Below, one piece after another: positions 40,177 to 63,456 of a DNA stretch of 64,000 nucleotides. The position numbers and the translations under genes were made by a program. This DNA comes from Phaeosaccion multiseriatum. Taxonomy: Eukaryota; Protista; Ochrophyta, other classes. The notes beneath the pieces were generated by a model. That model worked only from the letters and a program-made list of their open reading frames with translations, did no database searches and was not told where the DNA came from. The stretch spans positions 1,240,001 through 1,304,000 of the forward strand of contig OZ218960.1 in assembly GCA_965112735.1 (NCBI GenBank). Direction: 5' to 3'. Positions within the stretch are counted from its first letter, which is position 1, and every line of letters begins with the position of its first letter.

Positions 40177-40319
40177 ATAGAGAAAAGGGCTAGTCGAAGA
40201 AGCACCGTCGGAAGATTTGCCGATTATCATTTGCCGTTGCGTAGGGTTACGTAACCTCGGGTAACCGTCAAGCATTTTCTCTCTGCCTTCCTTGGTCGGT
40301 GCTTGCCTCTTGGAGGACA

Positions 40320-41582
40320 ATGGAGGGCGACAGCGCTGGGTGCACTAGCACCCGCCCTGTTACGATGGCCAGGAGGAAGCGCCCTCGCCGAGTGGCAATC
40401 CACAGCGTGGGCGCGTCTCGGCGCGTATCTTGGTACGACGGGGCCTCTCCGGAGACCATTCTTCGCTGTATCCGAGCGGCCTTTAGCGTCCCTACGGATG
40501 CAAGCGTGGAGCTACGGACGGCGGAAGGGCAGGTCGTCACCGACTTTGGGGGGTGCGCGGACGGCGAGAGGGAGGAGGACGATGATGACAGAGGGGGCGA
40601 TGGTGTTGGTGGAGGAGGTGCTGCGAGTGGAGGTGTTGATGGTCGGCAGTGGCCGAGGCTGCATCTGTGGGTGGTTTACCCGATGGATGATTTAGCCAAC
40701 CAGGCCGAGTCCCGCGTCCAGTCCTTTCTCTACGATGGTGACGGCGGTCACAGTGGTGGTGATGGAGGAGGAGGAGGAGGTGGTAGTAGCGGTAGAGGCG
40801 GCGAAGCCGAGGGGAGAGAGCATATAATTGGTGATGACAGCCCTTCTGATAGCTGCATCGGGGCAGGATCAAGCTGGAGCATTCGAAGTCGGACGAGAGG
40901 GGGGTGCGGAGGAGCAGGGAGAGGGGACTCCCTTCAGGGCGAAGTGACAGCAGCCGGAGTAGAGGTGGATGATATGAGTGGAGACCGCGGCAGCAAGCCC
41001 GTCGGCGAGCGGACGCCCCTCCTCGGTGCTAGTACTGATGCTGGCAGACGTGTTTCCTGCCCCCCTACCAAGCTGCCACTCGCATCACCAGCCTCTGCCG
41101 GACCTTTCCAGCAGATCGTGTCACGCGCTGTCGCCGTGGCCATACACCCGCCCCCTCCGGACTCGACCGCTCTCACGTGGCTGCGACTCAAGCGCATTCT
41201 TGCGCACCTCGCCAACGAGCGAACGTACCTGGCGTGGGTGCGGACGTCCTCCAAGACTTTCACCGTGGCTCTCTTATGCCTCGCCCTCGCCAGTGAGAGC
41301 GAGGACTATGCTTCATCCGCAGGTAGCAGCAGCAGCGTCTACGCAAGGCAGTACGCGGCCGTGGGGTTTCTGTCCATGCTCATGACCCCTGTGACGGTGT
41401 GGGTCGCCTTGGAGAGGTACCACAGCGTGGATGTGGCCATGCGGGGGGGAGTGTATGACGTGTTCCACAGCTTCCGCCACGGGGAGGTGCAGAAGGTGGC
41501 CCTCACGCTGGCCTTGCTCGTGGGCCTGGCTCTGTTTTTGATCACGGTGGACATTGTCGAAACCATTCGTCAGAGCTCGTAA
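40320..41582 (+). CDS. DUF202/VTC1-like membrane protein with N-terminal beta-grasp-like domain (intronless)
   Basis: HLANERTYLAWVRT followed by three hydrophobic segments. Confidence 0.8.
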   Translation: MEGDSAGCTSTRPVTMARRKRPRRVAIHSVGASRRVSWYDGASPETILRCIRAAFSVPTDASVELRTAEGQVVTDFGGCADGEREEDDDDRGGDGVGGGGAASGGVDGRQWPRLHLWVVYPMDDLANQAESRVQSFLYDGDGGHSGGDGGGGGGGSSGRGGEAEGREHIIGDDSPSDSCIGAGSSWSIRSRTRGGCGGAGRGDSLQGEVTAAGVEVDDMSGDRGSKPVGERTPLLGASTDAGRRVSCPPTKLPLASPASAGPFQQIVSRAVAVAIHPPPPDSTALTWLRLKRILAHLANERTYLAWVRTSSKTFTVALLCLALASESEDYASSAGSSSSVYARQYAAVGFLSMLMTPVTVWVALERYHSVDVAMRGGVYDVFHSFRHGEVQKVALTLALLVGLALFLITVDIVETIRQSS

Positions 41583-43223: not shown

Positions 43224-43865
43224 GAGTAGTAGTAGTAGTAGGAGGAGTAGTCCGCCCCCACTTACCGGAGCGACGACGTTTAAAGGGGTAGGCACAACGT
43301 CCCCTCTCTGGTAGTAATGCCTGCATAGAGGAGAGGAGGAGGAGGAGGAGGAGGAGGAGGAGGAGGAGGAGGAGGGAGGAGGAGGCGGAGACAAGAAGGA
43401 AGCCAAGAGAAAACAAGATGAGCCACTGTGGTAGTGCTAGAAGAGGAGCAAGTAGTGATACACCAGCAGCAGTAGTTGGTGATACAGTAGACGTCACAGG
43501 CAATGACTGACTACTGGGTGGTCTTCGGGCCTGGTGTTGAGCTACTACCCTAGCGCGGCACCATCCGTGTACTTTACCCTACTCTGCCCTTACTACTCTA
43601 CCCTTCGCATACTCTACCCTACTCTGCCCTTACTACTCTGCCCTACTCTACACACCTGAAGTCGACATTCAAGTCACTGTGGGGTGGTCACGTGGTGATG
43701 ACGAAGGTGCAGGTCAGCAAGGACCACCAGCCAGAGAGCACAGCAGAGCGAAGAGTTAAGGGCACATGGAGGGGCGAGTGAGTGAGTGAGTGAGTGAGGG
43801 AGAGAGGATCAGCGGCAGGGGCACGTCGGGGCACGGTCTGCCTGTCAGTCCAAGAGCGGAGGCTA

Positions 43866-43953
<88 letters not shown>

Positions 43954-45165
43954 GAGAAGTCCTCCCCTCAACCTCACTTCACTCCGCTCCATTCCCGTCC
44001 ACTCAACTCCACGCCCTCGCCCAGGCCCGTTCCCACTCCCCTCCCACCCCCAACTCCACCCCCACTCCACCTTTTCATACCTGAAAGCTTTCTTCAGAGC
44101 CTTGCTCCCTACCGTTGGGCTGCAAAAGACCCTCCCGCGCACCTGCACCAGTCCTCCATCCGAGGCCTTGGCCCACTCCTTCACCTCCTTCTTCGATCCA
44201 TCCTCCGACGCCGCTTGGTACTCCTTGTGCTGGTTGACCTTCAGTACTACGTCAAGGGCGGCGACGGTGGCCAGTGCCGATCCTAGACTGTGTCCGCTCA
44301 TAGTGATGGTGTCTACCTTACCCACACCCTTGTTATCCTTGCTGCCACCAACTTGCAGATACTCCTCAACAACACCCATGACGGAGGCCATCAGCGAAGT
44401 GTCTAACCCAAAGTCCTCCACCACCTTCTTGTCCTGTGCGGGTTGTGCGACGTTTTTGAGCCCAGGGAGGCCTTGGGATACCTGTGTGTGTAAGTCAATC
44501 AACCACGGAGTGCCATCGATTAGAGAACGATGGAAGGAAGGAAGGAAGGAAGGAAGGAAGGAAGGCAGTACTCGACAGGCAGCTTCGCAATCGGTGAATG
44601 CAGCGTGATCACAGTGAGCGGGCCAAGTAACATGATGGTGTGTGTCGACTACAAGACTAACTGCCACTGCTTACCTCAGCCAGGAGGCTGCCGATATCGC
44701 CTGCCCACGAGGAATCGGAGTCCTCGCCCATGCTGGAAAACTCATCGTCGTCCCCATCACGTGAGTAGAGCCCCAAGAACCCCCTGTGAGTGAGTGAGTG
44801 AGTGAGTGAGTGAGTGAGGGAGGGAGAGGAGGAGGAGCAGGGAGATAAGGGGGGGTCAGGAGGAGGAAGAGGAGGAGGGGAAGGGGGAGGAGGAGCAGGG
44901 ACGAGGAGCAGGAGGGGGAGGAGGAGCAGGAGGAGGAGGAGGAGAAGGAGGAGGACGAGGACGAGGAGGAGCCCTCCACCCGTCTTGGCCTCCCGTATGT
45001 ACCTACCTGTGGATGCCAATGTTGTAACACTCCTTGCCCTTGTGCTCTGTTTTGATCGGCAGGAGGGGCATGAGGACGAGCCAGCGCAGCCAAGACACCC
45101 ACTTCTGCTCCCTCTCCTTGCGCTTGTGCCAAAGGACCTGTTTTGCGACCCACCCGTCACACATC

Positions 45166-47920: not shown

Positions 47921-48026
47921 GGTCACCGGCTGTAATCAGCAATCAGGCCGGCTGGAGCTGCCGATAATCAGTAATCAAGGCGGGCTGGCGCCATAAAAGG
48001 AATCAGATAATCTTGTCCAGGGCCGA
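47921..48026. repeat. Left arm of imperfect inverted repeat flanking the LOX segment
   Basis: 48001-48026 is 25/26 identical to the reverse complement of 54673-54698. 47935-47955 is 20/21 identical to the reverse complement of 54731-54751. Internal taatcag motifs. Confidence 0.8.
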
Positions 48027-48112
48027 CTCCACACCCAGGGAGCTGCCTGTGCAAGGTGTTGAGGTTTGAACAGGTTGATGACGACCACCACCACGACGAT
48101 GCCGACGACGAC

Positions 48113-49794
48113 GAGGAGGAGGAGGAGGAGGAGGAGGAGGAGGGGGAGGAGGAGGAGGAGGAGGAGCAGGAGGAGGAGGAGGAGGAGGAGGAGGAGGAGG
48201 AGGAGGAGAAGGAGGAGAAGGAGGAGGAGGAGGAGGAGGAGGAGGAGAAGGAGGAGGAGGAGGAGGAGGAGGAGGAGGAGGAGGAGGAGGAGGAGGAGGA
48301 GGAGGAGGAGGAGGAGGAGGAGGAGGAGGAGGAGGAGGAGGAGGAGGAGGAGGAGGAGGAGGAGGAGGAGGAGGAGGAGGAGGAGGAGGAGGAGGAGGAG
48401 GAGGAGGAGGAGGAGGAGGAGGAGGAGGAGGAGGAGGAGGAGGAGGAGGAGGAGGAGGAGGAGGAGGAGGAGGAGGAGGAGGAGGAGGAGGAGGAGGAGG
48501 AGGAGGAGGAGGAGGAGGAGGAGGAGGAGGAGGAGGAGGAGGAGGAGGAGGAGGAGGAGGAGGAGGAGGAGGAGGAGGAGGAGGAGGAGGAGGAGGAGGA
48601 GGAGGAGGAGGAGGAGGAGGAGGAGGAGGAGGAGGAGGAGGAGGAGGAGGAGGAGGAGGAGGAGGAGGAGGAGGAGGAGGAGGAGGAGGAGGAGGAGGAG
48701 GAGGAGGAGGAGGAGGAGGAGGAGGAGGAGGAGGAGGAGGAGGAGGAGGAGGAGGAGGAGGAGGAGGAGGAGGAGGAGGAGGAGGAGGAGGAGGAGGAGG
48801 AGGAGGAGGAGGAGGAGGAGGAGGAGGAGGAGGAGGAGGAGGAGGAGGAGGAGGAGGAGGAGGAGGAGGAGGAGGAGGAGGAGGAGGAGGAGGAGGAGGA
48901 GGAGGAGGAGGAGGAGGAGGAGGAGGAGGAGGAGGAGGAGGAGGAGGAGGAGGAGGAGGAGGAGGAGGAGGAGGAGGAGGAGGAGGAGGAGGAGGAGGAG
49001 GAGGAGGAGGAGGAGGAGGAGGAGGAGGAGGAGGAGGAGGAGGAGGAGGAGGAGGAGGAGGAGGAGGAGGAGGAGGAGGAGGAGGAGGAGGAGGAGGAGG
49101 AGGAGGAGGAGGAGGAGGAGGAGGAGGAGGAGGAGGAGGAGGAGGAGGAGGAGGAGGAGGAGGAGGAGGAGGAGGAGGAGGAGGAGGAGGAGGAGGAGGA
49201 GGAGGAGGAGGAGGAGGAGGAGGAGGAGGAGGAGGAGGAGGAGGAGGAGGAGGAGGAGGAGGAGGAGGAGGAGGAGGAGGAGGAGGAGGAGGAGGAGGAG
49301 GAGGAGGAGGAGGAGGAGGAGGAGGAGGAGGAGGAGGAGGAGGAGGAGGAGGAGGAGGAGGAGGAGGAGGAGGAGGAGGAGGAGGAGGAGGAGGAGGAGG
49401 AGGAGGAGGAGGAGGAGGAGGAGGAGGAGGAGGAGGAGGAGGAGGAGGAGGAGGAGGAGGAGGAGGAGGAGGAGGAGGAGGAGGAGGAGGAGGAGGAGGA
49501 GGAGGAGGAGGAGGAGGAGGAGGAGGAGGAGGAGGAGGAGGAGGAGGAGGAGGAGGAGGAGGAGGAGGAGGAGGAGGAGGAGGAGGAGGAGGAGGAGGAG
49601 GAGGAGGAGGAGGAGGAGGAGGAGGAGGAGGAGGAGGAGGAGGAGGAGGAGGAGGAGGAGGAGGAGGAGGAGGAGGAGGAGGAGGAGGAGGAGGAGGAGG
49701 AGGAGGAGGAGGAGGAGGAGGAGGAGGAGGAGGAGGAGGAGGAGGAGGAGGAGGAGGAGGAGGAGGAGGAGGAGGAGGAGGAGGAGGAGGAGGA
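48113..49794. repeat. ~1.7-kb (GAG)n trinucleotide tract
   Basis: Essentially uninterrupted from about 48250 to 49794. Confidence 0.95.
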
Positions 49795-50367
49795 AGGAGA
49801 CATGGAGGAGGGAGGAGGAAGGAGACATGGAGGAGGAGGAGAAGAAGGAGGAGGAAGGAGGCTCGGAGGAGGAGGATGATGATGTGTTTGGCGAGGCAAA
49901 CGCGGCAGAGCACCCTATCCAAAGCCATCACTCCACTGCCACATCCGCCGACCACTACCATCCCCCATCCACTGCCATCCCTTCCCTCCCTCCCTCCCCT
50001 CCTTTACCGGTACAACTGCAAACCCTGCTCCGCTCTGCTGTGCTGTGCTGCTCCTTCCACCCCACCCAGGAGGCTGTTGGCTGCCCCCAGGCGGGGACCC
50101 GAGACTCGGGAAGATACGGCACTGAACAGAACGCCAAATGCATTACTTAAATCGTGAGTGAGGCAGCACCCGTATTGTAGGGCATTCCGTGGTGGCTGAC
50201 AGCATGACGACTCAGCCTACTGTCTCGTACTGCCTGTACGTAAATGAAAGAGAAGCATGCTCCCGAACCCAACTCAATTATCACCCCAAGCAAAACACTA
50301 CAAGTCAGGCACTCGCAGCTGAGCAGGGGCAAAGCAAGACGGCCCCCTTGCTTCTTCACACTCCATG

Positions 50368-53118
50368 TTAAATGTTGATGCTCGAGGCCACCTTGCTGGG
50401 CAGCAGGACCTCATACGGAATGGTGGCGCCCTCGTTCCGCTTGTTGATGATGAGCTCCACCGCGTCCAAGTTGCGTTTCAAGTTGTTGTACACCGTGGGG
50501 TACTGCGAACGGAACTCCACCCACTCAATCGGATTGTTCGAGTTGGGGATGCGCTCGCCAATCTGGTCCAAGGTGGGGTTCTCAGGCGAGGCCAAGAGCC
50601 AAGACACCAGTCCCTGGAAGACGGCGATTCCAAACCCGCGCGGATCGGTGCCACCGGGCACAGCAGCGAGGATATCAGCCGTGGTGATGTCCTCCTCGCC
50701 GTCGGGAACGCCCGCGAAGATGGAAGCAGGGCGGTTGATTGGGGTCGCCGTGTACGGGTATTGCACATAGTTGAGGGCCGAGTGTTGAGCAGAGGCTGCC
50801 CAGACGATGGTGGTGAGCACCTTGACGAGCAACTGCTTCTCCGCAATACTCTCCGGAAAGCCGGAAATGTCCGCCTTGGTACACGCCTCGGTGCACCACT
50901 CTTGAATAATCTTGTCTGCCTTCACGTCCGCGTCGGACTCGTAGATTTCATCAACCATGTCCGAGCAGTAGCTCCACAAGGTGTCCCAAATGAGGTATCC
51001 GTCATCACGATAGCGGTACCCCTTAAACTCGTCACTGCGGCTAAAGCCGCGCTTAGCCAGCTCGTCAGGCAGCCCCCATGTCATGAAATCGTAGTCGACA
51101 AAGGCCTCCTCGATCAGTTGCACCCCCTGAGCGGTGCCGACGGCAAGGGTTCCATCCGTAATGGCGCCTTCATCCGCCACGAGAGTTTGGCGCCCCAGGT
51201 AGTTGATGCCGATGCTGCCGCGAAAGTGAGGCTTGAGGAAGTCCCCGAGGGGGTGCTTGTTCTTCTCCAGCACGTTGTGGCACGCAACAACCATCGGCTC
51301 GACGGCCAGGTGCGTAAAGCCCAGGTGGTTGGTGAACTGATGGACTTGATTGTCAGCGCAGTTGACATGCAGCTTGGCGAAGAGGTACTTGTTGGGTGTG
51401 CTCGAATCCGGCGTGTACACAGGCGCATCCTCCCTCTCCGGCTCCAACAGAATCCCCAGGACGGAGAGCTCCTCGGCACCAGTGCGGTAGATCAACATGG
51501 TTGGAGCATAGAGTGTGACGCCGTTGAGGTTCAGATCCATATGGCGGAGGGGCTTGTAGTCCAAGACGTAGAGACGCTTCTCCTCCACGAGCTTGTCCAC
51601 GTCCGAGCCATCCTTCGCCTTGAGTGCGAGGAGCTTGGCGGGAAGACCGGCCTTGTCCTCGCCCCCCACCACTCGGGCTTGGATAGGGTTGAGGCCAGCA
51701 AAGATTTGCCGGAGGAACTCCTCGTCTTGCGCCCAAAGGTTGTTGTTCAGGATGCTCGGTATCGGAATGTGTCCTCCTTTGCCCTCCTTTGAGAAGTAAG
51801 CGGCATAGCGCTCGTAGGTGCTGGCCACCGGGATGAGCCGACGTTGCAGATCGAACTGCGTCTCAATGTACTCGAAGATAGCGTTGAAGATAAGCCCAAC
51901 CTTGCGAGGAGGAAGCACCTCCGAGCGGGGCAGACCCTTGACGTTGGTGGGCAGGCCTGCTGCCTTGCGGGCGTACTCCCAAACGGGCAGCTCCGGTGCC
52001 GAAGCGAACTTGAGAATGTCAAACGCACGACTCTTGAGGAGATCGACTGCTCCCTGTAGCTTCTTGAGCGACTGCACCTCCTGCTGGGCCTTGGACAGGG
52101 GCAAGACGTCACCTGTTCGCAAGGTCAGCTCCAGGTCCACAGTCACTGTGGCACCCTCCTTGCCGCCTTCAAGGTCCAGCGTCATCGTGACGGGCTCACC
52201 ACTGGTGAGGCCCTCCTTCTGAATGTCTACAACGGCGTTGCCGAGCCACCTGTCGATGCCCATCTCACGCTCGTACACTGTGATGAGGGCCTTGCTATCC
52301 TCCTTCAGCACGTCGAAGCAAACGGGCGCGGCGCGAAAGGAAGGAGAGCTTCCAAACTCCTTGGACTTGACGGTTACCGGCGGCGCTCCGTCCACGGCAA
52401 TGTTGGCGTAGGATGTAACCAAGAGGTTGGACGAGAGATTCTCCCCACTGACCACCGTCACGTCCAGCGTGCCCAGGGAAGGATTGATCGTACTCTGCAA
52501 GTGATCAATCCCATCCTTGTAGCCTTTCGCTTGGGCGCCGACAAGCATGTTGACGGCGGGGGAGTCGGTCCAAGAGCGCCACAAAACGTTTGTTGAGTCA
52601 CCGTTGGCAGTGAGAGAAACCACCGTCTGGATAGCCTCAATCTTGAACGGAAGGCCTTTCATCGAGACGAGGTCGTAGCGCAACACATAATTGCTGGGGT
52701 CACGGGCCACCAACACTTCCTTGGTGGTCAAGCTGGGGCGGTCCTTGAAGACGAAAGTGCGGGTGTCGCCAATGTCGTTGCCCGTAGACTCATAGTCGGT
52801 GTAGATGGGCCACCAGTCGTTCATGCCCTCGAAGTTGGAGAGGAGTCCCCACACCTTGTCGATGGGTGCATCGACCGTTCCAGTAGCAATGGCAGTGGCG
52901 GTACCGTCGGGAATGGTCGCCGCTGTGGCGGCAGGAGGAGCAAGGGTGTGTGAAGCTCCTGCTGCTGCTGCTGGTGTTGAACTTTTCGCAGATGCCCGCG
53001 CCATCGACTGGCGACTGCTGACAGGGGAGTGGTCGAAGGGCGCGATGGGTGCGAACCCCTCTGACAGCAGGGTAGTGGTCGCGGCCGCGATGGCCAGGAC
53101 CATCAGCTGGAGCCTCAT
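50368..53118 (-). CDS. LOX: Lipoxygenase with N-terminal SRPBCC/START-like and C2 domains; putatively plastid-targeted; intronless CDS (916 aa)
   Basis: MRLQLMVLAIAAATTTLLSEG-FAP presequence; VDAPIDKVWGLLSNFEG..WWP..GDTRTF (SRPBCC); GTLDVTVVSGENL..ITVYE..DRWLGNAVVDI (C2); WAQDEEFLRQIFAGLNP, HQFTNHLGFTH, HPLGDFLKPHF, YRYRDDG, QHSALN and C-terminal SINI (all iron ligands). Confidence 0.95.
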   Translation of the reverse strand: MRLQLMVLAIAAATTTLLSEGFAPIAPFDHSPVSSRQSMARASAKSSTPAAAAGASHTLAPPAATAATIPDGTATAIATGTVDAPIDKVWGLLSNFEGMNDWWPIYTDYESTGNDIGDTRTFVFKDRPSLTTKEVLVARDPSNYVLRYDLVSMKGLPFKIEAIQTVVSLTANGDSTNVLWRSWTDSPAVNMLVGAQAKGYKDGIDHLQSTINPSLGTLDVTVVSGENLSSNLLVTSYANIAVDGAPPVTVKSKEFGSSPSFRAAPVCFDVLKEDSKALITVYEREMGIDRWLGNAVVDIQKEGLTSGEPVTMTLDLEGGKEGATVTVDLELTLRTGDVLPLSKAQQEVQSLKKLQGAVDLLKSRAFDILKFASAPELPVWEYARKAAGLPTNVKGLPRSEVLPPRKVGLIFNAIFEYIETQFDLQRRLIPVASTYERYAAYFSKEGKGGHIPIPSILNNNLWAQDEEFLRQIFAGLNPIQARVVGGEDKAGLPAKLLALKAKDGSDVDKLVEEKRLYVLDYKPLRHMDLNLNGVTLYAPTMLIYRTGAEELSVLGILLEPEREDAPVYTPDSSTPNKYLFAKLHVNCADNQVHQFTNHLGFTHLAVEPMVVACHNVLEKNKHPLGDFLKPHFRGSIGINYLGRQTLVADEGAITDGTLAVGTAQGVQLIEEAFVDYDFMTWGLPDELAKRGFSRSDEFKGYRYRDDGYLIWDTLWSYCSDMVDEIYESDADVKADKIIQEWCTEACTKADISGFPESIAEKQLLVKVLTTIVWAASAQHSALNYVQYPYTATPINRPASIFAGVPDGEEDITTADILAAVPGGTDPRGFGIAVFQGLVSWLLASPENPTLDQIGERIPNSNNPIEWVEFRSQYPTVYNNLKRNLDAVELIINKRNEGATIPYEVLLPSKVASSINI

Positions 53119-54543
53119 ATTGGACCTGTGACAAAAAAATGTTCCGTGGAAGAGCAACATGATAGGGAGCGAGTGAGGAGGGTAGCAGGGAGGACAATGC
53201 ATGCAGCCAGGGCTGGTGTTGGCCCCTGCTGCCTCTTCCCTCCCCGCCGTGTCAAAAGCTGCCCGCCCCTTTCGCTACATGGAGGCCGCCGCCCAAGGCA
53301 CAAGAAGAACAGCATTGGACCGCTCCTCCCCCTCCCCTCGCTCCCTCCCCACTGCTCGAGTCGAGACTCGCAGCAGAGCGATGCATGTGGTGAAGAAGGG
53401 CCACATACACCAGGTCACGCAACCGCCCCTTGAAGCTGCCCCCATCTTAGTAAACAAGCCCAACCCTGCACGGAACCCACTCCCCCCCCCCCCTCTCCCC
53501 TCTTCTTCCTCACGTTCGGCTCTTGGTTCTTCCTGCTGCTCCCTCGTCTGCCCCTCCTGTCCTGCCTGCTGGGGTGGCCCGCCCCTCGGCCTCTCTCAGC
53601 AGCAACAACCCTGCAGACCGCAGTCGCCTGCCTTCTTGCTTTGCTCCTGCATGCCAGAAAGGGAGGAGAAGAGAAGGAAGTGCATTTCACTTAGGAGTGT
53701 TCAGGCAGATCAAAAATAATAGCGGACCCCGTACCTCTCGCTCCTCCTCCTCCAATACCCTGCAAACACGACTTGCAAACGCCTTCTCCACTCTGGCTCT
53801 TTTGCTTGTATCGCCCACCAGACAAGGGGGGGGGCATTAGCCAGCAGTCTGCAAAAAAGCTTCAAGCTTCCGTCGGAGAGAAAACGGCGCGAAAATTAGG
53901 ATTGGGGAGAGAGCAAGGGGTAGCAATTGGGAGAGGATTAAAACAATAATTGACATCAAGCCTCCGCTGTGGTGCCCGCTGCTGCTGCGGCATTGCTCAA
54001 TCCAATTGCAACCAGCAGCAGCACAACTGCAATCCAACAATTGCAGCAGCAACAACAGCAGCAGCCAAAGCAATGGTAAGAATCTCGGCAGAATCTCGAG
54101 GGGTGTCGAGGGTGCTGCTGGGTAGACAGGAGGCGAGAAGCAAGAGATGAGAGAGCCTGCTCGAGAGAGAGTGCTTTACATCTGCTCTTCGTCTTCTCAG
54201 GCGGCACAGGGTCAGCCCCCCTCTCGCTGATTGGATGACCATGGTGCTGTTGGGGCTGGGGGGACGGAGGGGACGGAAGGAGGGAGGGAGGGAGGGAGGG
54301 TCGACCCCTGACGTGCTACCTGCTACCGCCGGCACCAGCCGGCATGCGACCTACCACCGCATCCGGCCTTGATCTGCTACCAGCCGACCAGGCAGCCGAC
54401 CGGCCAACCATTTTCAGTTTTCAGTTTTCAGGAAAAAAAAAAGCTTGAAGGCCAACCAGCCGGCCGGCCAAACATCAGCTGCCACCGCCGGCATGAGCTA
54501 GCTGCTACCTCCTCCCTCGATGCATGCCCAGCGCAGGTCTCTG

Positions 54544-54672
<129 letters not shown>

Positions 54673-61155: not shown

Positions 61156-62231
61156 TTATTTACCGTAGGAGGAGCGCGACCCCCGTGGGGAGGTACATGC
61201 GCCGCCTCCGCCCATCTTCTCCACCACTCCCATATCCTCTATAAACTCAAATTTGTTCTCCAGCATGTCATTTCTATATGCCTCCAAGAAGGCCGAGAAG
61301 GAGTGCCCTACTTCGTCCCCCAGCCCCTCGTCGGAGTCGAACTCGAACACTGCGCCATTGGCTTGAGTGTCTAGCACCTGTTCGTACGTATGGGAGCAAG
61401 GTATTTCGTCACAGCGGGCGGGGAGGATGAGACGTGTGAGGAGGTGCCATATGGGACTTGGTGTTTCGCTGAATGTAGGGGGTACATGGGAAGAGGAGAG
61501 GCGTTATGGACAATATGCGAGTCGGTCGACCCTCGAGAATGTAGAAAGGGAAAGTGTGGTGCCTATACGTGAGAGAGTACTAGTGTGGAGGATTTTTGAT
61601 TCGTCATCGATCGATCCATCCATCGATCGGTCCATCAGCCGAGAAGGACGAAAACAGCAAGCAGGGCCGTAGATGTCCATAGAAAGAAAGAGAAGGGCCT
61701 GCACTCACAAACATGTTGCTGTCGCAGTCGGAGGCAAAGGGCACAAGCCCCTCTCTCCAGCCCTTGGGGCTCTCCGAGTCGAGATCATTAATCATCTTGC
61801 ACATTGCCTCATGTGTTAGTGCCTGCTTGTCGTAGAACCAAATCTGACCGTTCTGCTCGTGTTTCGCGCACCAGTCATAGGGGTCAGAGGTGTACATGTG
61901 GAGAAGCATTATCAGGCCAGTTAGTTGGGACTTGCACTGTTCGTTTGTTTGTCAGGAGGGATGGACAGACAGATGATGCCGAACCTGCTGGGCGCAGAGG
62001 GTCTTAAAACCCTTGGGAAGCCCCCCTCCACATGTCTTCTCGAGCGTCTGAATGTCCTCTGGGGTGGCGGGGTCACCATCCTCTAGAACTATGCTGGAGC
62101 ACCGCGTGAACCAAGCGCACACATCTGCACAGCGAGAGGAGAGAACGGAAGATGAGAAGGTGGTCGTTCCCCCACGGCCCTTTCCTTCTTTCCTTACCTA
62201 AGACGCACTGCTGTATTTCGTCTATTGACAT
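61156..62231 (-). CDS. SMI1/KNR4 (SUKH)-like protein (about 4 exons)
   Basis: PATPEDIQTLEKTCGGGLPKGFKTL..NGQ..W..GLVPFASDCDSNMF|VLDT..GAVFEFD..SFSAFLEAY..LE. Confidence 0.7.
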
Positions 62232-62493
62232 GCTTCCCCTCCTCCGGTTCCCCTCCACCGCAACAGTCACCATGTTGCCACTACGTCAGGCCGTGGAGAG
62301 CACCGTGACGAAGCAAGAGAACGGCGGGATGGTGGGGGCGAGTCAACCGTCCGGTGAAGAACCAACGTTTGTACCTGTGAATCCGTTACTTTTTTCACGG
62401 GAGATGCATCTGATCTGTGGAGCCATTGACTTCCTTCTCTACCTTCTGAATTGGCCTGCATTGCATGGTTCGCTAGAGAGCGCTGGCACTGCC

Positions 62494-63456
62494 ATGCCGA
62501 CAACTGCAGCCCCCGGTTTCAGCAGCAGCTTGCTCTCAGGTGGGGGCAGCGAGAAGAAGCGGATCTACGTGACCTTCGAAGGAACCACCGCATGCGTAGC
62601 ATGGTTCAGTGGCGCTAGCGATGAGAGCATTTGTAAGGGAATCGCGCAAGCCTTGCGACTGCCTGCAGGCGCCGGTTTCTGCGTCATCGATCCCAGCGAT
62701 GATGAGGGAAGCGTGCTTGCCATAAGTGACTCCATGCCTTCCGGGCTCCAGGTAACCCTTCAATTGGGCAGAGAAACAAAGCCACCAGCATCAGCGGTGG
62801 AACGGGAGGCACGAGGAGGAGAAGAAGAAGGAGGAGGAGGTGTAGGAGGAGCGTCAACACATCAGCAACAGTCACCCTATCAACCTTCGCTGCCGCTGAG
62901 CGGGAGTGGACACAATAGCGACAGCGAGGAGGCGGACCGCCATGAGGGAGAGGGGCGGCCAACCGCAGCAACGAGCTACGGTGGAGTAGCGGTGAGTGGC
63001 GGCCTGAATGGTGGGGGCGGCAGCGGGAAGAAGCAAGGGGACCACAACAACAAGGGGGAGGGCGAAGAAGGAGACTTTCGAGGCCAACTACTCAAGTTCG
63101 AGCGGATCAACGCGCACCTGGCCAACGAGCGAACGTGGCTAGCGTGGGTGCGCACCGCCCTCTCCGTCCTCACGCTCGCCCTCAGCTTCCTCAGTCTCAC
63201 CGAAGACCTCAACACGTGGACAAAGGTGTGCGGGGGCATCCTCGGCATTGCGTTCGTGTCGAGCACTTTGCTTACCTATGTCACGGGGTGGAAACGCTAC
63301 CAGCGGGTGACGGAGGTGCTGGCGTGGAGGGGCAAGCAGATCCAGGGCAAGTTTGGGCGCTTTAGCCTTTCGTACCAAGCCCAAGTGCTGGCGTTTTCGC
63401 TGGCGCTGGCGCTACCGCTGTACGGCTATGCGGCCTACCGAGTGGACAGTTTGTAG
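62494..63456 (+). CDS. DUF202/VTC1-like membrane protein, paralog of 40320-41582 (intronless)
   Basis: INAHLANERTWLAWVRTALS plus three TM segments; N-terminal VAWFSGASDESICKGIAQAL matches VSWYDGASPETILRCIRAAF. Confidence 0.8.
   Translation: MPTTAAPGFSSSLLSGGGSEKKRIYVTFEGTTACVAWFSGASDESICKGIAQALRLPAGAGFCVIDPSDDEGSVLAISDSMPSGLQVTLQLGRETKPPASAVEREARGGEEEGGGGVGGASTHQQQSPYQPSLPLSGSGHNSDSEEADRHEGEGRPTAATSYGGVAVSGGLNGGGGSGKKQGDHNNKGEGEEGDFRGQLLKFERINAHLANERTWLAWVRTALSVLTLALSFLSLTEDLNTWTKVCGGILGIAFVSSTLLTYVTGWKRYQRVTEVLAWRGKQIQGKFGRFSLSYQAQVLAFSLALALPLYGYAAYRVDSL

Follow-up and report, generated by a model that had tools for sequence, protein, structure and literature searches.

Gene structure and domain organization of the locus

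The analyzed stretch of DNA (hereafter the window, 64,000 nucleotides in full) derives from the ochrophyte alga Phaeosaccion multiseriatum (assembly GCA_965112735.1, contig OZ218960.1, positions 1,240,001 to 1,304,000 of the forward strand) and carries on its minus strand a gene for a lipoxygenase (LOX) fused to an SRPBCC and a C2 domain. A single uninterrupted minus-strand open frame of 944 codons occupies positions 50368-53202 in the open reading frame (ORF) list, within which the complete, intron-free coding sequence lies at 50368..53118 (minus strand; 916 codons plus a stop at 50368-50370), as delimited by the ORF list, the alignment to the protein P0001 and the family alignment. P0001, a metagenomic protein of 902 amino acids, is the closest database protein and shares 60% identity in an alignment that covers its whole length, beginning with its first residues at Met 53118 and reaching the C-terminal Ile; on this basis the gene is read as intron-free, with its start Met at 53118 and a product of 916 amino acids. 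The in-frame ATG at 53202 was rejected as the start and is probably unused, the relatives beginning at Met 53118. The DNA around the gene, with about 58% G+C and kilobase-long trinucleotide microsatellites, is eukaryotic in style.

A full-length AlphaFold2 model was built from a 42-sequence family alignment (mean predicted local distance difference test score, pLDDT, 86.4; predicted template modelling score, pTM, 0.70), and it displays, in order, disordered residues 1-61, a helix-grip fold at 76-211, an eight-stranded sandwich at 216-333, linker helices from residue 343 and a helical LOX domain. The window gene is confirmed as an intact SRPBCC-C2-lipoxygenase of a stramenopile alga, with the domain order presequence, SRPBCC, C2, helical lid and catalytic domain. 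The preliminary description of this DNA had recognized the three domains SRPBCC, C2 and LOX, and the Pfam, profile and AlphaFold/Foldseek analyses uphold them; the positions that it gave for the first two, about 52900-52480 and about 52475-52120, agree with the 52486-52893 and 52117-52482 obtained here.

The SRPBCC helix-grip domain, of the PYR/PYL-like Polyketide_cyc2 type, spans residues 76-211 (52486..52893, minus strand) according to Pfam, profile and AlphaFold2 evidence. PF10604 Polyketide_cyc2 matches residues 78-210 with an E value of 2e-13, the SRPBCC profile retrieves from the PDB the entry 7tmu, named 'SRPBCC family protein', at 3.8e-14 and, at about 1e-10, abscisic-acid receptors of the PYR/PYL type, and the model exhibits a strand, two helices, an antiparallel sheet and a long C-terminal helix, with block-mean pLDDT values mostly of 85-96. 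Across the family the domain has a mean column identity of 43%, with invariant Arg, Gln and Thr positions and nearly invariant Glu, Asp and Tyr positions.

The second domain is an eight-stranded C2 beta-sandwich with degenerate Ca2+-binding loops, covering residues 213-334 (52117..52482, minus strand), as supported by Pfam, profile, Foldseek and VIA-align. On its own it scores 19.9 bits against PF00168 C2, just below the 22-bit cut-off; in relatives, the domains aligned with it column by column exceed that cut-off, with 27, 58 and 70 bits. A profile of 21 family C2 domains matches the solved C2 domains of myoferlin (2.5e-31), synaptotagmin-7 (5e-19) and NEDD4L (5e-16), and a separate AlphaFold model of the domain (pLDDT 90) has C2 domains as all of its listed structural matches. 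Foldseek places this model at template modelling scores of 0.73-0.82 to the C2A domain of plant extended-synaptotagmin E-Syt1, with the cPLA2 C2 also matched, and VIA-align, which is independent of Foldseek, gives a Z of 16.5 to plant E-Syt1 C2A, all 50 listed rows being C2. The LOX-associated PLAT/LH2 domain (PF01477) was sought in the window protein by Pfam, with no match at E up to 1, and PLAT as the identity of the middle domain was excluded by Pfam, profile and fold searches, none appearing among the 50 structural matches listed; the replacement of PLAT claimed in the preliminary description is thereby borne out. In the Foldseek search of the full model, animal PLAT-LOXs align over about 750 columns at a root-mean-square deviation of about 25 Å, which represents similarity at the level of domain order only.

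A canonical Ca2+-binding C2 domain carries five Asp ligands in loops 1 and 3. The loops were read from the family alignment against the C2 consensus, and on this reading one of the five aspartates is kept as Asp and two are Glu in the window protein. In loop 1, the DP[YF] motif of many relatives reads TSY (Asp to Thr), and the first Asp of this loop is absent throughout the family alignment; in loop 3, the cyanobacterial WDxN..KD reads YERE..ID (Asp/Asn/Asp to Glu/Glu/Asp). Since the Ca2+ ligands are largely lost, classical Ca2+-triggered membrane binding by this domain is doubtful, and with it the earlier suggestion that the C2 domain recruits the enzyme to membranes in a Ca2+-type manner. 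Two relatives, P0003 (JGI, 883 amino acids; two SRPBCC domains and LOX) and P0034 of Enhygromyxa salina (one SRPBCC domain and LOX), are cleanly devoid of C2, so that the domain was gained or lost within the family.

The helical linker or lid occupies residues 342-445 (51784..52095, minus strand; family 'link' hidden Markov model (HMM), AlphaFold2 and Foldseek), with predicted helices at 343-373, 404-421 and 424-431. The linker HMM also matches bacterial LOXs that contain neither SRPBCC nor C2, and Foldseek aligns about 600-690 columns of the model with the bacterial LOX structures of Cyanothece, Pseudomonas and Enhygromyxa. The catalytic domain follows at residues 446-916 (50371..51783, minus strand), as identified by PF00305 Lipoxygenase (residues 446-809, E 1e-55) and by sequence matches in the PDB, among them 5-LOX at 1e-44. 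All five predicted iron ligands are present (H598, H603, H779, N783 and the C-terminal I916); in the family alignment the three histidines do not vary and N783 and I916 hardly do, and the five align with the ligands H585, H590, H774, N778 and I899 of PhLOX2 in the red-algal species Pyropia haitanensis. The pocket residues N590, Q786 and R796, corresponding to Asn575, Gln777 and Arg787 of the related PhLOX, are kept in both paralogs of the alga, namely the window gene and a second copy on contig C5, and where PhLOX has the pocket-bottom residues Arg792 and Phe826 the window protein has Phe801 and Val838, the C5 copy likewise having Phe and Val.

Family membership and comparison with characterized lipoxygenases

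An exhaustive HMMER search returned 2380 LOX relatives, about 12 of whose 50%-identity clusters are colinear with the window protein across all three domains. A word-index protein search had returned at least one match for the whole protein and at least eight for the LOX region. The Shewanella protein P0033 is colinear over residues 75-853 (40% identity, E 3e-152); its 90% cluster includes BAJ02412 of S. violacea DSS12 (SvLOX), and a sister record from S. psychrophila is named 'Lipoxygenase/Polyketide cyclase/C2 domain'. Cluster look-ups identified P0066 as PhLOX2 (AGN54275), P0005 as Coleofasciculus/Trichocoleus and P0004 as Prochloraceae, and when the SRPBCC, C2 and linker columns of the family were turned into HMMs, each of the three modules was recovered both in SvLOX and in PhLOX2. 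In other family members the SRPBCC domain is present two or three times.

In a quick maximum-likelihood tree of the catalytic domain, with supports from the Shimodaira-Hasegawa-like approximate likelihood ratio test (SH-aLRT), the window protein groups with its paralog and two metagenomic proteins, followed by an Anisonema transcript, then by P0003 and Enhygromyxa, and then by SvLOX. The nesting of the window clade with Enhygromyxa, P0003 and SvLOX receives SH-aLRT values of 96-100, and PhLOX2 falls in a neighboring subclade. Judged from its sequence, the window gene is a bacterial-type iron lipoxygenase of the SRPBCC-C2-LOX family to which SvLOX and PhLOX/PhLOX2 belong.

The architecture as such is not new, being present in red algae, marine bacteria, cyanobacteria and amphioxus. 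SRPBCC-LOX fusions have been described and assayed for PhLOX and PhLOX2 of Pyropia haitanensis and for SvLOX of Shewanella violacea (PMC4319731, PMC11507377), which substantiates the mention of red-algal SRPBCC-LOX in the preliminary description, and SRPBCC(1-5)-C2-LOX proteins of amphioxus and cyanobacteria have been reported (bioRxiv 10.1101/2022.05.18.492404). Multifunctional catalysis, with double peroxidation and hydroperoxide-lyase or allene-oxide-synthase (AOS)-like reactions, is known for PhLOX and SvLOX from published assays (PMC11507377).

SvLOX (BAJ02412) has the same SRPBCC-C2-linker-LOX order and is the nearest characterized protein in the tree, but it is bacterial, has no presequence, bears Ala and Phe, respectively, at the Coffa and Sloane sites, the two specificity positions described below, and was reported with hydroperoxide-lyase but without AOS activity (PMC11507377). 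PhLOX and PhLOX2 (AFQ59981/AGN54275; P0066, P0180), of about 900 amino acids, share with the window protein the SRPBCC domain, a second beta domain, the LOX domain, the iron ligands and the pocket N/Q/R, whereas they are only 28-36% identical, belong to the other subclade and have Ala and Phe at the two specificity sites. The Pyropia papers name the whole N-terminus 'SRPBCC' and do not name a C2 domain; because the family HMM finds the same C2 domain in PhLOX2, the 'two perpendicular beta barrels' of PhLOX are most simply read, through PhLOX2, as SRPBCC plus C2. The cyanobacterial (Coleofasciculus, Trichocoleus, Prochloraceae) and amphioxus proteins contain the same kinds of domain in the same order, the cyanobacterial C2 domains scoring 58-70 bits, but they differ in the number of SRPBCC repeats, which reaches three in cyanobacteria and five in amphioxus against one in the window protein, in keeping more acidic C2 loop residues (DP[FY], WDxN..KD) and in having Ala at the Coffa site. 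The prokaryote-like LOXs of the brown algae Ectocarpus and Saccharina are likewise stramenopile proteins with a bacterial-type catalytic domain, a helical lid and, in some, signal peptides, yet they are described as single-domain enzymes of 496-747 amino acids with no N-terminal beta domain (PMC5712309).

The N-terminal presequence

Ahead of the SRPBCC domain, two segments were recognized by inspection. The first is a signal-peptide-like hydrophobic helix at residues 1-21 (53056..53118, minus strand), which ends in SEG and is followed by Phe; its hydropathy reaches a maximum of 2.1 at residues 7-18, and the model shows a helix at 2-19 and then disorder. The second is a transit-peptide-like stretch at residues 22-70 (52909..53055, minus strand) that begins with FAP and was recognized by composition, disorder and poor conservation: Ser, Thr, Ala and Pro make up 69% of it, with three basic residues and one acidic, the pLDDT of residues 1-61 is below 50, and the stretch is the most divergent part between the paralogs. 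The C5 paralog shows the same succession of signal peptide, Phe and transit-like region, and P0001 has the signal peptide and the Phe as well, but the region downstream of them is less typical there.

The bipartite plastid presequence of stramenopiles consists of a signal peptide, a Phe at +1 of the cleavage site and a hydroxylated, basic, transit-like region. The signal peptide, the Phe and the Ser/Thr/Ala/Pro-rich, net-basic stretch fit this pattern, and for this reason import is proposed; the presequence suggests that the enzyme is directed into the complex plastid. A somewhat unlikely alternative is that the signal leads into the secretory pathway or endoplasmic reticulum, leaving the protein secreted or periplastidial rather than in the plastid stroma or thylakoid. 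The signal-peptide-like helix is indeed the sole certain feature of the N-terminus, and among brown-algal LOXs there are some whose signal peptides receive mixed verdicts from ASAFind (PMC5712309); against a purely secretory route stand the Phe directly after the hydrophobic core, which is found in the window protein, the paralog and P0001, and the 45-50 residues of plastid-type composition downstream of it.

The Coffa and Sloane specificity sites

The Ala/Gly stereo-control position of LOXs was defined by Coffa and Brash (reviewed in PMC13319228), and in the window protein it is Gly642, encoded by GGG at 51193..51195 (minus strand). The motif INYLGRQTL, already singled out in the preliminary description, places this Gly in the alignments opposite the Ala of human 5-LOX (INTKAREQL) and soybean LOX-1 (INALARQSL). 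Ala occupies the same column in the C5 paralog (GCG), in P0001 to P0005, in P0009 and in 36/38 more distant family rows, so the window Gly is reached through a one-base change, GCG to GGG. In a survey of 148 representatives of all LOX matches, 108 have Ala and 34 Gly, the Gly rows being nearly all distant LOXs; within the SRPBCC-type clade of this survey only P0061, a fragment of 409 amino acids, has Gly. The coral 8R-LOX and 11R-LOX and the human 12R-LOX resemble the window protein in having Gly at the aligned position within an N-x-x-G-R motif, and coral 8R-LOX has a 'C2-like' N-terminal domain for Ca2+ activation (title of PDB 2fnq), but these classical R-LOXs possess PLAT rather than true C2, have no SRPBCC, are about 20% identical structurally, and their R products are proven whereas those of the window enzyme are only predicted.

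The second site, of Sloane type, is Leu658, encoded by CTT at 51145..51147 (minus strand) and by TTT (Phe) in the paralog. Located 16 residues past Gly642, it aligns with F644 of PhLOX2, equivalent to Phe642 of PhLOX, the residue that the Pyropia authors named as the Sloane determinant; the mapping is validated by the fact that the same alignment reproduces the published SvLOX Ala739/Leu770 opposite PhLOX Arg792/Phe826. The PhLOX double mutant F642V-F826L shifts the main alpha-linolenate product to 13-hydroperoxyoctadecatrienoic acid (13-HpOTE), with no double peroxidation and no volatiles, the F642 exchange having been assayed only in this combination (PMC11507377). Wild-type PhLOX, with Ala at the Coffa site, forms 9(S)- and 12(S)-hydroperoxides (PMC11507377).

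That Gly usually predicts R-stereospecificity, as had been stated earlier, holds as a fair rule (PMC13319228), with documented exceptions among fish: the LOXs of zebrafish and other bony fish have Gly and nevertheless produce 12S-hydroxyeicosatetraenoic acid (12S-HETE) (PMC10531496). A product of R type or otherwise shifted is a reasonable prediction for the window enzyme, and because of these exceptions the chances of the stereochemical part are about even.

The Gly codon was also compared with sequencing runs. The site is spanned by contigs that three runs of a single sample contributed, with no mismatch there among the differences listed (23 more are unlisted), and in a run of a second study one 49-base, low-depth piece lies over the codon with two unlisted differences. 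Where contigs of this other study overlap the LOX gene, they depart from the window sequence by about 3-5% (12/417 bases at 50368-50784 and 19/398 at 52093-52490), a divergence attributable to another strain or to the C5 paralog placed at the 95% threshold.

Divergence of the two paralogs

The second copy of the gene lies at C5:814855-817575 (minus strand) and is 87% identical to the window copy at the protein level, with a whole-gene ratio of non-synonymous to synonymous divergence (dN/dS) of 0.41. An excess of replacements was detected in the segment around the Coffa helix, residues 621-685 (51064..51258, minus strand; paralog comparison), where 13 non-synonymous changes stand against 1 synonymous change, compared with 69.5 against 60.5 over the remainder of the mature protein (p 0.004 in Fisher's test, the region having been chosen post hoc). 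Polarized with the outgroups P0001 and P0009, the replacements at residues ~620-685 are 8 derived in the window copy and 1 derived in the paralog. The window-derived changes include Asp634Gly, Ala642Gly and Phe658Leu, for which the ancestral residue is retained in 26/38, 36/38 and 33/38 family rows, respectively; by this outgroup comparison, Gly642 is a recent derived change of the window copy.

The synonymous divergence (dS) between the copies (window 50368-53118 against L002:1498-4221) forms a mosaic, being 0 at residues 221-300, about 0.03 at 381-440 and 601-680, and 0.2-0.3 elsewhere. Values that range in this patchwork from 0 up to about 0.3 are suggestive of repeated gene conversion involving contigs C11 (the window locus) and C5, and the low dS of the tract makes the replacements retained there more notable.

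An unlikely reading of these changes sees in the window copy a redundant duplicate whose constraint has been relaxed, in which Gly642, Leu658 and Gly634 represent drift or early decay and the products are unchanged or the activity is lower. It would account for derived changes at positions that most of the family conserves, it agrees with the RNA runs on record, among which none contains the gene, and the fish enzymes demonstrate that Gly need not yield R products. Yet the ORF is intact over 916 codons with all iron ligands and the three pocket residues in place, the whole-gene dN/dS is 0.41, the changes are clustered in a single pocket segment instead of being spread along the gene, and both specificity-site substitutions are to smaller residues at classical determinants.

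The neighboring lipase and other features of the window

Downstream of the LOX gene, at a distance of 5.7 kb and on the same strand, an exon-sized ORF at 43756..44667 (minus strand) encodes a class-3 (DAD1-like) lipase with a GHSLG nucleophile motif (PF01764 Lipase_3, E 7e-6). On C5, a 70%-identical copy of this lipase follows the paralogous LOX at a distance of 5.9 kb downstream, and because both LOX loci have a lipase about 6 kb downstream, a lipase-LOX block was duplicated; the conserved position suggests a compact module of substrate release and oxygenation. The C5 LOX is flanked by two inverted class-3 lipase copies, C5:808159-808983 (minus strand) and C5:822214-822777 (plus strand), and the window locus has the downstream copy only. 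The stops inside the C5 lipase matches are probably introns.

Between the LOX gene and the downstream lipase, a trinucleotide microsatellite of about 1.8 kb extends over window positions 48000-49900, with a G+C content of 65% and a GC skew of 0.86; translated, it gives poly-E/R/K from the plus strand and poly-S/L/P from the minus strand. Upstream of the LOX gene, positions 54500-54650 hold a dinucleotide microsatellite of (CA)n type that gives a Thr-His repeat in one frame. Two further ORFs, 40299-41582 and 62152-63456 (both plus strand), each contain a C-terminal DUF202 (PF02656); they are about 20 kb apart and are possibly paralogs.

Proposed function and evolution

The explanation that we consider probable is that the gene is a member of the SRPBCC-C2-LOX family which works in a plastid lipase-LOX module and whose window copy was retuned after duplication. 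The presequence would deliver the enzyme into the complex plastid, where the neighboring lipase would free polyunsaturated fatty acids, such as eicosapentaenoic acid (EPA), from plastid lipids. The C2 domain, standing where plant and animal enzymes have PLAT, may help docking on lipid surfaces, probably without classical Ca2+ control, and the SRPBCC pocket may bind a fatty acid or oxylipin and tune the access to the LOX pocket or its product spectrum. In the active site, Gly642, being smaller, would give oxygen a path to the opposite side of the pentadienyl radical, and Leu658, likewise smaller, would deepen the pocket. Acting on the substrates that its Ala/Phe twin also uses, the window copy would then form a hydroperoxide of different position and probably of R configuration.

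For the SRPBCC domain, the published work on PhLOX is informative. Mutagenesis traced its hydroperoxide-lyase and AOS chemistry to LOX-pocket residues, and deletion of the N-terminus altered or abolished this chemistry, with loss of the hydroperoxide-lyase products (PMC11507377). Because the truncation shifts products while the lyase/AOS chemistry resides in the LOX pocket, a role in modulating the reaction or handling the substrate is favored, and an SRPBCC pocket that binds fatty acids or oxylipins and modulates the LOX pocket is consistent with the PhLOX truncations. The opposing proposal, advanced in the preliminary description, that the SRPBCC domain captures and converts the LOX hydroperoxide as a second catalyst (cyclase, dehydratase or isomerase) in a two-step oxylipin synthase recruited to membranes by Ca2+ and C2 could draw on the strong conservation of the domain and on the lyase products lost upon deletion, but it found no support and is very unlikely, given the assignment of both PhLOX activities to the LOX pocket, nearest solved relatives that are ligand receptors (PYR/PYL) and uncharacterized SRPBCC proteins with no cyclases, a PhLOX2 that is devoid of lyase activity though it retains SRPBCC, and C2 Ca2+ ligands that are mostly substituted.

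Several points weigh against the retuned plastid module. Expression of the gene is presumptive, given the result of the RNA search, and the products assigned to the window protein and its twin are predictions; the plastid targeting was read by inspection. The Gly/Ala rule is poorly validated in the bacterial-type clade, and the bony-fish enzymes are exceptions to it. The segment with excess replacement was selected post hoc, patchy dS and gene conversion could distort local ratios and make simple ratio tests fragile, and the changes at conserved positions could also mean relaxed constraint. The sample with three runs is probably the assembly's own source, hence the read check of the Gly codon is not independent.

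Beyond the retuned plastid module itself, it is a tentative possibility, less likely than otherwise, that the paralogs constitute a natural specificity-switch pair, in which selection acted on the Coffa helix (Ala to Gly, Phe to Leu and neighboring positions) once the lipase-LOX block had been duplicated. One plastid module would draw S-oxylipins and the other R- or regio-shifted oxylipins from a single EPA pool, with the conserved SRPBCC pocket as an internal sensor of fatty acids or oxylipins gating the LOX channel. If true, this would be the first Gly/Ala stereo-switch in a recent natural neofunctionalization within the bacterial-type SRPBCC-C2-LOX clade.

The gene places the SRPBCC-C2-LOX type in a stramenopile alga, a lineage whose published brown-algal LOXs are single-domain (PMC5712309). 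Although the architecture itself is ordinary for the family, the Gly and Leu changes at both specificity sites, set against an 87%-identical Ala/Phe twin, are new. This minimally different pair, Ala/Phe against Gly/Leu, offers a ready test of the Coffa and Sloane rules in the bacterial-type clade, and it could show how algae diversify their oxylipin signals after gene duplication.

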